From Dimorphilus gyrociliatus (taxonomy: Eukaryota; Animalia; Annelida): a stretch of 64,000 nt of DNA. Below, one piece after another: positions 19,961 to 25,604 of this stretch. Made by a program: the position numbers and the translations under genes. The notes under the pieces are model-generated. The model was not told where the DNA came from. It ran no database searches and saw nothing but the letters and a program-made list of their open reading frames with translations. Each line of letters begins with the position of its first letter. Position 1 is the stretch's first letter. Location of the stretch: assembly GCA_904063045.1 (NCBI GenBank), contig CAJFCJ010000009.1, forward strand, positions 1,158,942-1,222,941. Reading direction: 5' to 3'.

Positions 19961-22415
19961 TTAGCCCAATTTCAAAGCAGCAATATCTCTAGCTTTAACA
20001 TCCTTTCTTAACCTTAATATCCTTCTGACGTCATTTGGCGATAATCGCCAAGTAAATGAAGATGATGCGCCACAATAATCCTTCAGTTCATCAACATTTT
20101 CAACGCTTAATACGAGAGCCATTTGTTGAATCCTGGCAAACTTATCTCTCACCGTCCAAGAAGTTAAAGATGTTATATAAGTGAGAAGAGTTCGTAAATC
20201 ACGTTCTAGTTGCATACCTCCGAGTCTGTTGTAAAAAAGAAAAAGTAGACAAATTAAATATTTATAGAAATATTCTCACATACTGTATAATAAAAAGGTA
20301 GTAATTCTTAAATAGATAATTAGATATTTTACAACGAAAGTTTTCACTCTTAATTACACAAGATTGAAGTTTTTTCATTCTACAAACCTGTTGAATGTTC
20401 TACTTAATATGGCTTTCTCTAGTCTGATACTAAACTCATGTGCTGATTGATTAATTAGAGTATCAAAATTCTCGGTAGAGAGATCCTCCTGCAAAGATTT
20501 AAAAGCCATATCCATTGTAGCTATAGCTTGAAACGTCCAAGGATCGTCCACTTCGTAGCAATCCAAATCTTGTTCATTTAAAACATGACTGACATTTGAA
20601 AAAAAGTCAATTGCCGCGACTATTTTTGCCTTTACAACATTCAAGTGCAGCTTGGCACAAAATTCATTTTGTAAAGAGGTAAAGTTTGACATAGAACTAT
20701 TTAATTCACAAACAACAGCTGTCAATTTTGCAGATTCCTTAACCGTTCTATCATCTTCGAACTTCGATTTTAACTTTTTAACATTTTCTATTGCCCTTTG
20801 GGTATTATTTGCGTATAAAGCTAAAACTTGTTTATCCACCGAAGACAATTTAATCTGAGCAAAAAGAAAAGGTTAAATTATATATATTTGTTTACAAGAT
20901 AAGATGACGAGAAAAAGTTATTATTACCTTTAAATTTTCTAATAAATTACTTTCCAGTAAAGTTACGGCATTGTTAATAACTGCACAGGCAGCTTGAACA
21001 CTTGCTGTACTTAAAGACCTAGTGATACACTTTTCCAGTACATAGAATATATCATCTACAAATGAAGAAACTGTTGCTGTATTTAAAGAAAATGTACCAT
21101 CCATTTGTTTAGCCTTAAAAACGCTTTCTGTCATCCATCTCTCTTCCAAAGCAACGTATGACGATATCAAATCATGTATTCTCCTCGATAATTTGCTTTC
21201 GGGCATATCGGGAGCTCTTCTTTGTATGAATCTTGCGTATAAATGGGCTCTATATGATAACGATGATATTTCTGCCAAAACAGGATCAATTTGTCTGGCA
21301 TCGTCTAAATCGTTTAACTTCCGTTCATTTTCAAATGAGGTTAAAAGTGTCAAAGCGTGTTTATCGCATTCAGCTTGGACATGTAATAGAGCATCCTTTA
21401 AACGGTCAGAACCATAATATGCATTGACTAATGGTTCTAGAGTATTCACTAACCCTGCAGCTTCTTCTAGTAGTATATTAATAGAATCAGCAAATTTAAC
21501 ATGATATCTAACGTTATTGTCCAAAGCAGCTTTAACGTCTGCATCCATAATCTTCGATAAACGATTACTAAGGTTGAATTTCACATTTTTGAAATAAAAA
21601 TTTTTATATAAACTTAAAAGGAAAACGCTGAGTTTAAAAGATCAAACTTTGAATCTATAGCTATATAAAGAAAAATTGTGATATTCAACCTTATATGAGT
21701 GCAGTATGTAGCTAAACCAGTGTCGTGTTCGCCTAATTGTGGGAAAAGTTTGAAAAACCTTTCAACTGTTGCTGTGTCTTCATTTCTTGCAGCTGAGTTC
21801 AATCGATCTTTAACAACACTCTTAAGTTTTTCATGAGCTTCGTGTAAAACTTTTAGAGAAGCTTCTAAAGCACTACTAGTATCCATTTTTCTCAAAACCG
21901 CTTCATCTAGAGCTAAGAATCTTTTTATATGTGAGGCTGCGAGCTCGTAGTCTTCTTCATTGAGAGCATCCTTTACCCCATCCGCACACAATTTTAAGTC
22001 GAGAATATCGTCTACTCTACGAAGACAGGCGCTTATTCTGCTTCCCGCCTCATCAATTTTTCTTACTTTGCAACTAACTCCGTCTGCCAGAGTTGCTGTA
22101 GAACGAAGCTCCTTAGCCAAGTAATAGGCGTCTGACTTGACAGTATTAAGAGAACTAGTATCAAATTCTGGTATTCTTTGTTTACATAGCTCATTGATCG
22201 AATTCTGAATTTTAGTCTGAAATAAAAAAACCGGTGAGATGTTCAGTTTAAAAGTAAACGATAAATATTGTTTGATATTGTAATAGCTGTTAAAAATTGA
22301 ATATGGAATTTTATCATACTTCTTCTACACATAGTTTGTCATAAGCTTCTTGTAACTGCTCTAATGTTTGTAAACTGTCGATGTTTAAAACATTTGTCGA
22401 GCTGGCATCCGCCAT
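19961..22415 (-). CDS. COG4: Conserved oligomeric Golgi complex subunit 4
   Basis: The start is MADASSTN...LEQLQEAYDKLCVEE. It contains RLDDILDLKLCADGV and ERFFKLFPQLG, and ends WTVRDKFARIQQM...TWRLSPNDVRRILRLR, all typical of COG4. Confidence 0.95.
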
Positions 22416-22525
22416 GTTTGTTTACAACAGCTTTTCCGGTCAGGTTCGTGATCCTTAAAAGACATTTGATTCTGAAAAACGCTTCCGAGCACTATCCCTA
22501 CTTTTTAGAATTAAATCGCCAGTTT

Positions 22526-23141
22526 ATGAAAAGAACAAGAATGCCTAAAATTAAATTAGTGGCACATAGACGTTTTATGCAATATTCAAAGTTATCCGTT
22601 ACAGAAAAGATAAAGAGAAGAATGGAAATCGAAAGACTTTTTTCAGATTGGAAAAAGGCTAAAAATGAAAAAGGATGGCCGAAATGTTCGAAAAAGAAGG
22701 ATACTTTTGAAACTAATGAAACTTATGTTGAACATGAAAAAAGTTACGATATATTTGAGAGTGATACTTCTACCACAAAATCTGTCTTATTCAAAACTAA
22801 TGATGAAAATGAATGCTCAACTGACAATGACGGAATGATTTTCGATAAAAATACGTTTCAAACTTTGGTAAAAGATGTTGCCTTAGAAAACCGGAGAGGT
22901 TTAAAAATTACAAAGGTTGCATTATCTCTAATTCAGGTATAATGTTATATAATCTGCTTAGATTCATTGATATTTATAAAAAAAATTAAATTAATTCCAG
23001 CAAAGCTGCGAAGATTACCTTGTTGATATATTTAGGGATTGCGGTAATTCTTCACTAATGAGAAATAATCAAGCTATAGACCTTAAGGATTTTTACATGG
23101 CATTAAAGATGAGATTTAGTTTTTCAAAAAATTTCCAATAG
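22526..23141 (+). CDS. Highly divergent histone H3-like histone-fold protein (183 aa, one intron, long N-terminal extension)
   Basis: Exon 1 is 22526-22936, a phase-0 GT-AG intron is 22937-23000, and exon 2 is 23001-23141. The joined fold KNTFQTLVKDVALENRRGLKITKVALSLIQQSCEDYLVDIFRD...IDLKDFYMALKMR aligns without gaps to H3 [43 protein letters not shown]...IMPKDIQLARRIR. Confidence 0.82.
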
Positions 23142-23527
23142 TAACATTTCTGCCTATAATTTCAAATAATCTTGAAATTTAATTTTTATGAAGTTTCGTT
23201 TTATTGTAGTTGTTTCAAATTTTTGCTCTTTAAAATATAAATAAACTTGTATATCTAGAAAAACTGTTCATATTTGGGTAATTCTGATAACCTTCTTCAA
23301 TATTTTAAAGAATGCACTTTACATGACAGAAATATCTTATTTTCGACAAAGCATTTTCTCTTAAAAAAAGAGAACTTTTTCATGAATGCAGCAAATTCAC
23401 AAACTTATAGATATAAAATCTGTTAGGCATCTATATATTAACGACTTAATTTGTAAATATTAACAGTCACATTTATTTATATATACTGTATATATCTTTA
23501 AAGAAAATGGTAAGCAACACAAAAGAA

Positions 23528-25604
23528 TTAGTATAGGGGAAGAGATTGATCAACACTTTTCTGCCAAGCGTACAATCCTCCTCTGATATCTTGGAAGCAG
23601 ATTCCCAACGACGTTAACTTTTCCTGAAAGAATTTGACGGCGATTTGGGAATCATTGCCTTTTCGACAAACCACAAAAACTGTATAAAAAAGCTTAGATT
23701 TATATCTTGGTTATACTGTATATCAGCTAAAAGTAATACCTTTATTGATATTATTGTCTTTTATTGTGTTCTCGATGCATTTTAGTTGGTCTTCCTTTTC
23801 TATACTTCCGATGGGAATATCTTGATAAGAAAGATAGAATATTTTATATAAGGGTCAAATATACATTAATTATATCATAATTACTTAAACATTCTCCTAA
23901 ATCGCATATCTCCAATTCAACTGGCGACCTTACATCAATTAATAAATGTTTTTCTTTACTCTTCAATATCTCTGAAAACTCCTGTACAGAGACTAAGTTT
24001 AAGATTATTGTGCAAAAAATGATAATGAAACCTTACTTTTGCTGAAATTCTTTGACTTTGTTCCAAAATAGTCAAATTTTTGCCCTGAAGTGTATAAAAA
24101 GTTTTATTTATAAAGTAATAATAAAAATATGATTATTAAAATCTTTTTAACCTTATCATCTGCTTTTGCCCCACAAAATTGCTCATAGTCAATTAACTCT
24201 TTTATCGAAGGATCATCCCCACAAACAGCGCAATTTTTTTGCCTTGGTCTCAAGCCAATATTTCTAAAAGACCCTGCGAGACCATCAAAAAGAAGCAGTC
24301 TCTGCTTAAAGGTATCTGTAATATATTACGATATAGTATACTATACAATCATTTCAATTCCAGATAGAATTTACCAGGTAACCCAATAGCAATTTTTATT
24401 ACTTCTAATGCTTGTAATGAACCAATTATTCCAGGCACTTTTGGGAGTAAAATAAATTGCTTTATTATATAGTTGTTAAATAGGAAGTACTTTGAATATT
24501 TTTATGAGATTTACCTACTCCCAAGACTCCTCCGTCTGAGCAATTGGTCACCGTCTCCGGTGGTGGAGGTTTAGGGAAGAGACATCTAAAGCATGGTCCA
24601 TTTTGGTAATTATACACAGTTAACTGCAATATTAGAGTATATTTTTATGAAAGCAATTATAGAGTGAATATAAATAACCTGGCCTTCAAATTTTAAAGCA
24701 CTTCCAGAGACTAGAGGCTTCTGACATAAAACAGCAGCGTCATTCAATAAATATCTTGTTGCTACATTATCAGTAGCATCTACAATTATATCATATTGAT
24801 TTATCAATTCTAGGGCATTTTTACTGCTTAAAACCGTATGATACGGAATACATTTAACTGACGAGTTCAAGCTGTTAAAAACATCGTAAGATTAATAGGC
24901 TATCTGTTTAAATTTAAAAATAGTTATTTTACTTAGAACACGATGCAGCTACAGAGGCAGATTTCTTTAGACCGGTTCTCGATTCAGTATGTAAAATTTG
25001 ACGGTGTAGATTACTTAATTCAATTTCATCATAGTCAACAACACCAATAGTTCCTTTAGAAAATTTGAAATTATCACTTTAGATTTACATACATATATTA
25101 CTCTTTACCAATTCCTGCAGCAGCTAAATAAATTGCTGAAGGACATCCTAAACCCCCTGCTCCAACGATTAGTACACTTGTGTTTGAAAGTCGAAGTTGA
25201 CCTGATATAATACAATAACTGAGTCATCTGACAATACATAAATAAAACAATTATTGGCAAAGAAATATAAAAACACATGGAAACTTTATCACTATTAAAC
25301 CTAAAATTATTACCTTTTACCCCAATCTCTGGTAGAATTAATTGCCTGCTATATCTTAATATGTTTTCATTGTTTAGATTGCTTATTGCCTCCTTGTTTA
25401 GCGAATAATCTAGAGACTGAACTTTGGGTAATTTTTCCTAGCGATAATAGGATAAAAGTTAGAATTTTTTGTTATATCTATCTATTTCCTTACGTCTCCA
25501 TTAAGAGAGTTATTCAATTGATTTATAAGGTCATTTTTATCCTTTAGTTCTTTTTTGAGCTTTTCAATCTCATTTATATAGCTTAATTTTTCATGAGAAT
25601 TCAT
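23528..25604 (-). CDS. MOCS3: Adenylyltransferase/sulfurtransferase MOCS3 (UBA4)
   Basis: [53 protein letters not shown], and a C-terminal rhodanese with CRKGNDSQ and GGLYAW. Confidence 0.96.

Follow-up and report, generated by a model that had tools for sequence, protein, structure and literature searches.

Few known proteins evolve as slowly as the core histone H3, and the locus described here raises the question of what a gene is whose product ends in an H3-type fold but is otherwise hardly recognisable as H3: a nucleosomal variant, a centromeric histone, a member of another histone-fold family, a pseudogene, or an H3 copy that has taken on a role outside the nucleosome. The gene lies in Dimorphilus gyrociliatus within what we call the window, the whole 64,000-nucleotide stretch of contig CAJFCJ010000009.1 that was analysed. 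It consists of two exons on the plus strand (22526-22936 and 23001-23141) and is carried in the public annotation as the hypothetical DgyrCDS7508. Its parts are as follows.

22526..22936, plus strand: coding sequence of exon 1, 137 codons, with an ATG at 22526
22526, 22541 and 22622, plus strand: candidate start codons Met1, conserved Met6 and annotated Met33, taken from orthologues and annotation
22541..22720, plus strand: basic N-terminal domain, residues 6-65, pI 10.7, 21/60 Lys or Arg
22721..22834, plus strand: acidic variable linker, residues 66-103, pI 4.05
22835..22936, plus strand: first half of the fold, residues 104-137, corresponding to H3 60-93 (alpha1, loop 1, start of alpha2)
22937..23000, plus strand: intron, GT..AG, 64 nt, phase 0, separating the codons of the residues that align with H3 Q93 and E94
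23001..23141, plus strand: exon 2, 46 codons, in which residues 138-175 finish the fold and are followed by an 8-residue tail and TAG at 23139-23141
within exon 2 from 23001, plus strand: second half of the fold, residues 138-175, corresponding to H3 94-131 (rest of alpha2, loop 2, alpha3)

Transcription and splicing of the gene are seen in run X1 (2017), the only public run in which this stretch occurs, evidently a transcriptome because its contigs are without the introns of genes on both strands. A contig of 4025 nt from this run spans 21200-23152 with no mismatches and omits exactly the 64 bases 22937-23000 (the joint is reported as 22933->22998 with 'cut +3', equal to 22936/23001). The earlier note on this DNA, made from the letters alone, had proposed a phase-0 splice across 22937-23000 that joins a complete, gap-free H3-type fold; this is now seen in the transcript contig as well as in the sequence, and the absence of spliced reads, which the note had named as evidence against the gene, is contradicted by the contig spliced at 22936/23001. 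The same contig crosses the 110-bp spacer unbroken into the neighbouring gene COG4, whose minus-strand introns are also removed. As one contig continues into both genes, the transcription units of COG4 and the H3-like gene abut or overlap at their 5′ ends, and as the contig is merged with COG4 its depth can be assigned to neither of them. A second X1 contig of lower depth (about 3 versus 346) tracks the H3-like gene up to 22781, beyond which come 255 letters that resemble nothing in 21200-24800; a rare isoform, a chimera or a trans-joined read-through product might account for it. Rows labelled 'DgyrG7508' in the differential-expression tables of PMC7854359 were dropped as data for DgyrCDS7508, as the numbering differs: P and T identifiers are counted per isoform (one gene has both DgyrP13078 and DgyrP13079) and G identifiers per gene, so that DgyrCDS7508 is probably not DgyrG7508. 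In that paper the row counts of Supp Data 1 and 2 also seem to be interchanged when compared with those given in the legend to Extended Data Fig. 8.

The translation of exon 1 is 100% identical to the NCBI protein DgyrCDS7508 (151 aa, here P0001), a model that uses the same splice junction and starts at the internal Met33. Both orthologues described below start at MPK[IV]K, the equivalent of which in D. gyrociliatus is Met6 (22541), so the conserved start is Met6 or the nearby Met1, not Met33, and the protein is 178 or 183 aa long. The 183-aa protein beginning MKRTR that had been put forward before is indeed present in the frame, with the correction that the start conserved in the relatives is the Met of MPK[IV]K at 22541. 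The public model is probably 5′-truncated, so that 27-32 N-terminal residues, which both relatives conserve, are missing from it. On the other side of the start codon the H3-like frame remains open (22364-22525) across the antisense of COG4 exon 1, and ORF callers lengthen the protein through it, as in a 192-aa ORF in the window and in P0002 of the relative L001. In the relative L002 in-frame stops lie 15 codons upstream of the MPK[IV]K start, and as the frame is closed there, the upstream extension is non-coding.

The gene is flanked on both sides by other genes at close range.

22320..22415, minus strand: first coding exon of COG4 (Pfam COG4_N, COG4_m), start codon at 22415
22416..22525, no strand: spacer between the start codons of COG4 and the H3-like gene, 110 bp
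23142..23300, plus strand: 3′ flank with AATAAT and AATAAA hexamers, tail to tail with the MOCS3-like gene
23195-24800, minus strand: MOCS3-like gene, with a ThiF domain, a rhodanese-like exon and seven short introns; its transcript contig starts at 23195

The start codons at 22415 (minus strand) and 22526 (plus strand) bear out the 110-bp head-to-head arrangement with COG4 that had been described earlier, and the spacer between them is presumed to be a shared bidirectional promoter together with the 5′ UTRs. Directly beside the COG4 start codon, window positions 22417-22446 (679-708 in L001, 4777-4806 in L002) form a conserved element containing TTCCGG, which we take to be an ETS-like core. 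In the three-species spacer alignment (A5) 27 of the 31 first columns are invariant and the remainder has diverged, neutral sites being saturated. This element of ∼30 nt may act as the core of a bidirectional promoter common to both genes, or belong to the COG4 5′ UTR. At the other end of the gene, Rfam gives neither a histone 3′ stem-loop nor any other family in 22300-23600, in agreement with the earlier description of a gene without a 3′ stem-loop.

Orthologues of the gene were found on contigs from two relatives, L001 (run ERR14224705) and L002 together with L003 (runs SRR23372229/31). Run ERR14224705 is cited in a Tara Pacific coral-microbiome paper (PMC13083261), and L001 apparently stems from a dinophilid-like meiofaunal worm that was sequenced together with coral. 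In word-based searches of 5.8 billion protein clusters, for which exon 1, a three-species exon-1 profile and a fold profile served as queries, only the D. gyrociliatus protein and those of the two relatives came up. The same three proteins only were recovered by an HMM search of 1.84 billion representatives, whose profile (A2, 132 positions) covers exon 1 only and could miss distant relatives recognisable solely by the second half of the fold; a JGI metagenome scan likewise gave no H3-like relative. In both relatives COG4 lies head-to-head with the H3-like gene at a distance of about 125 bp, exon 1 is the same, exon 2 is intact, and a phase-0 intron (68 and 75 nt) interrupts the same codon position. 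The downstream synteny differs, as the MOCS3-like gene of D. gyrociliatus is replaced in both relatives by a TauD/GBBH-like dioxygenase gene on the minus strand (L001 1954-3169, L002 6013-7244).

The comparison of the three species also gives the rate at which the gene evolves. Amino-acid identity between species is 52-63% for the H3-like gene versus 91-98% for COG4, and dN (Nei-Gojobori) is 0.23-0.33 versus 0.03-0.05, so the H3-like gene evolves 6-10x faster than COG4, and vastly faster than H3. Synonymous sites are saturated in both genes (dS 1.0 to >2 in the H3-like gene), and intron identity between species (33/64) is at the random level; the reading frames are intact in 3/3 species despite these saturated neutral sites. 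With dN at 0.23-0.33 while dS is saturated, the H3-like gene is under purifying selection. The proportions of changed sites are in keeping with this (pN 0.20-0.27 versus pS 0.55-0.73), as is a dN/dS of about 0.23 for the least saturated pair, with lower values in the other pairs. The earlier note had held that a ratio near 1 would point to a decaying pseudogene; the observed ratio is well below 1.

For the fold itself, Pfam and PDB searches were made with the annotated P0001 (151 aa, same splice) and with exon pieces in place of the 183-aa protein. Pfam PF00125 (Histone) matches P0001 at 35.7 bits (E = 1.2e-8; cut-off 26.4 bits), exon 2 alone gives E = 0.043 with the same family, and hmmscan with E up to 10 places none of the other histone-fold models (CENP-T_C, CENP-S, TFIID-31kDa/TAF9, CBFD_NFYB_HMF) on P0001. 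The best PDB matches of P0001 in phmmer are H3.1, H3.2 and H3.3, its residues 72-143 aligning gap-free to H3.1 60-131 with 21/72 identities at E about 1e-5. When the three-species fold profile (A3) is used, H3.1 is matched at E = 1.7e-9, and the best 60 PDB matches are H3 types in 60/60 cases and CENP-A in 0/60. The order alpha1-L1-alpha2-L2-alpha3 is collinear with H3 without insertions or deletions, and the C-terminal end comes about 0-8 residues after alpha3 in the three species (8, 4 and 1 residues in the alignment). Because the alignment to H3 60-131 is gap-free, loop 1 is not lengthened. Similarity to H3 begins only at H3 residue 60 in the HMMER alignment, and a local alignment of H3 24-68 (tail and alphaN) with the N-terminal 100 residues was no better than shuffles (p = 0.18-0.64).

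These searches reproduce what the earlier note had drawn from a hand alignment: the same 21 of 72 residues are identical to H3 60-131 in the phmmer alignment, no gap runs through loop 1, and alphaN is absent, the alignment starting at H3 60 and shuffles scoring equally well in that region. A best match to a different family such as TAF9 or CENP-T, the outcome it had named as adverse, did not appear, the best matches being to H3. Structure prediction contributes less. The ESM Atlas model of the H3-like protein matches H3 clusters at a TM of about 0.5, whereas the AlphaFold2 models are too poor to rely on: pLDDT was 40 for P0001 with a 4-row alignment and 60 for the fold alone (with a kinked alpha2), the secondary structure of the latter running, at low confidence, helix-strand-helix-strand-helix. 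Foldseek of this low-confidence fold model against the PDB returned EF-hand noise and no match at E ≤ 0.001. Judged by sequence comparison, the C-terminal histone fold is descended from histone H3.

Which parts of H3 have been kept is informative. Each of the three orthologues has 19-21/72 positions in common with H3, and fourteen positions are both identical to H3 and invariant in the three species (F67, Q68, V71, A88, Q93, C96, E97, Y99, L100, F104, D106, D123, A127 and R131). We infer that these residues make up the buried core of the H3 fold and its internal contacts; the remaining core positions stay hydrophobic in the three species, and the D. gyrociliatus copy retains K122, D123 and R131. 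At the following positions the alignment gives, in the order D. gyrociliatus, L001, L002:

R63: D, D, D
R69: T, N, S
R83: K, R, R (kept basic)
H113: M, V, M
A114: R in all three species
K115: N, S, N
R116: N, N, R
T118: A, V, A

Among the DNA-contact basics R63, R69, R83, K115 and R116, only R83, in loop 1, is thus kept across the three species. H113 is a residue of the H3-H3′ four-helix bundle, and position 114 lies within the surface of that bundle. The PDB alignment confirms the substitutions H113M, R63D, R69T, K115N, R116N and T118A that had been listed for the D. gyrociliatus protein before. The pI of the fold is 9.1 in D. gyrociliatus and 5.3 in both L001 and L002.

The part of the protein that is most conserved between the species is the N-terminal domain (residues 6-65), with 38/60 identities to the L001 orthologue compared with 39/72 in the fold and 16/37 in the linker. 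It includes the stretch SKKKDTFE, which is invariant in three species. The acidic linker that follows differs in length by 10 residues between species. The earlier description of a tail of ∼100 aa with basic and then acidic blocks can now be given as a domain of pI 10.7 followed by a linker of pI 4.05. The N-terminal ∼100 residues match no Pfam family, and against the ESM Atlas they give nothing above noise. A conserved N-terminal stretch (RRY...EKRRRK) was considered as a displaced alphaN and found to be unsupported (shuffle p = 0.18-0.64).

Taken together, our data show a functional, expressed two-exon gene, a fast-evolving H3 offshoot that turned up in no species but D. gyrociliatus and two close relatives. 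The description of the gene as a lineage-specific, highly divergent, intron-containing H3 variant of replication-independent type is therefore supported. For its role, we give about an even chance to a lineage-restricted H3 offshoot whose fold would still pair but would build no normal nucleosome. As the hydrophobic core is kept (F67, V71, A88, Y99, L100, F104, A127 and the D106/R131 pair), the handshake dimer of the histone fold is probably retained, and from the residues alone the most simple partner would be H4. Because the tail, alphaN, H113 and most of the DNA-contact basics are lost, and two of the three species have a neutral to acidic fold, the protein would not be expected to wrap DNA in the manner of a standard nucleosomal H3. 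It would then act as a non-nucleosomal histone-fold module, or at most as a very atypical nucleosomal one, and its targeting, whether nuclear or to nucleic acid or a partner, may be the task of the conserved basic N-terminal domain. That the H3 copy has turned into a new non-nucleosomal histone-fold protein, in which the fold is a dimerisation module only, for H4 or some other partner, and the new N-terminal domain carries the function, is a possibility that we advance more tentatively; such a protein might, for instance, buffer or escort H4 in eggs and embryos, or serve as an adaptor at chromatin or kinetochores.

Alternatively, the gene may encode a nucleosomal, replication-independent H3 variant, for example of the germline, sperm or early embryo, whose nucleosomes would be open or unstable as alphaN and several DNA contacts are missing. 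Such a variant would explain a fold that runs collinear with H3 to the same C-terminal end, a basic residue at the R83 position, the retained K122, D123 and R131, and the basic fold of D. gyrociliatus itself (pI 9.1); an intron and the lack of a stem-loop are also found in replacement variants, and germline histone variants commonly evolve rapidly. It is more difficult to reconcile with an invariant Asp at R63, with the loss of R69 and K115 in three species and of R116 in two, with the loss of H113 next to an invariant Arg at 114 within the four-helix-bundle surface, and with a protein that has neither alphaN nor an H3-like tail. Given an acidic fold in two of the three orthologues, we would favour the non-nucleosomal role, at its roughly even chance, over a destabilising nucleosomal one, which we consider unlikely. 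A fast-evolving fold, a likewise fast-evolving N-terminus that does not align with H3 and a single-copy, lineage-restricted gene would also fit a second centromeric H3, that is a CenH3 paralogue serving, for example, in meiosis or the male germline like the Drosophila Cid paralogues. The unlengthened loop 1, the absence of alphaN and the lack of CENP-A among the best 60 PDB matches (0/60) make this quite improbable, and the known histone complement of the worm adds to the case. By homology mining Martin-Zamora et al. (Genome Biol 2025, PMC12153100) list 17 D. gyrociliatus histone genes, namely h3c1, h3c2, h3-3, h3uv1, h3uv2, cenh3 and eleven H2A/H2B/H4 genes; DgyrCDS7508 is absent from this census, and its cenh3 is DgyrT17426, a protein of 139 aa with loop 1 lengthened by three residues (Table S6). 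The search for another CenH3 in the genome that the earlier note had proposed thus ends with one assigned gene, and the H3-like gene is not the worm's main CenH3, as a separate conventional cenh3 exists. In a hand count the fold shares 14/72 identities with this cenh3 and 21/72 with H3, which, together with the existence of the 139-aa protein, weakens the 'atypical CenH3' option that had been offered before.

In its layout, with a long tail ahead of a C-terminal histone fold, the protein recalls CENP-T, and CENP-S/T, TAF9 and TAF12 clusters appear at TM 0.48-0.51 in the Atlas structure search, as would be the case if the protein belonged to one of these or a similar histone-fold family and merely resembled H3. 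However, Pfam at E up to 10 gives only PF00125 for the fold, all top PDB matches are H3 and gap-free, and the protein ends 0-8 residues after alpha3 without extra C-terminal helices of the CENP-T type, which leaves this explanation with very little credit. We give equally little to a decaying pseudogene or a transcribed, functionless ORF, even though the gene is very divergent and its transcript contig is merged with COG4. The frame, both splice sites and the intron position are kept in three species in which synonymous and intron sites are saturated, pN (0.20-0.27) is far below pS (0.55-0.73), and a frame of 183 codons in DNA of 70% A+T would not remain open by chance; the pseudogene reading is thus largely refuted.

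To our knowledge, clear cases of an H3 copy leaving the nucleosome are rare and mostly ancient (CENP-T/S, TAFs). The gene described here would be a young and traceable case: sequence statistics still reveal its H3 ancestry, it is expressed and evolves under purifying selection, and it has acquired a new conserved domain and lost most features specific to the nucleosome. If a non-nucleosomal role is true, a core histone would recently have given rise to a new histone-fold family. D. gyrociliatus has, as far as we know, one of the smallest canonical histone gene sets among animals, and its homology-based census of 17 genes is incomplete, as exonerate-style mining misses divergent variants. Because the worm is culturable and has a compact genome, tagging and knock-out are feasible, and these could reveal the role of an H3 fold outside the standard nucleosome.

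Finally, for comparison we set the gene against the known systems that it most resembles. With H3 and H3.3 it shares a fold that is collinear with H3 60-131 and sits at the C-terminal end, and with H3.3 in particular an intron and the lack of a stem-loop. Unlike H3, the protein is without the ARTKQTARKS tail and the K4/K9/K27/K36 motifs, as well as alphaN; most of the DNA contacts, T118 and H113 have given way to other residues, two of the species have a neutral to acidic fold, an N-terminus of ∼100 residues is new, and evolution is fast where H3 is almost invariant. CenH3/CENP-A and the Drosophila Cid paralogues are likewise fast-evolving H3 derivatives, which combine an N-terminus not alignable to H3 with a single-copy gene of the replacement type, but CenH3/CENP-A differs in its lengthened loop 1 and its alphaN. 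The likeness to CENP-T is one of layout only, a long and mostly non-globular N-terminus with conserved short stretches being followed by a C-terminal histone fold. CENP-T carries extra C-terminal helices after its histone fold, whereas the H3-like protein has no such helices after alpha3, gives no CENP-T_C match and has a fold derived from H3. The nearest comparison within the same genome is with h3uv1 and h3uv2, which are also non-canonical genes of the H3 family (PMC12153100, Table S6); these keep alphaN and a nearly canonical fold, in contrast to the far more divergent H3-like gene.
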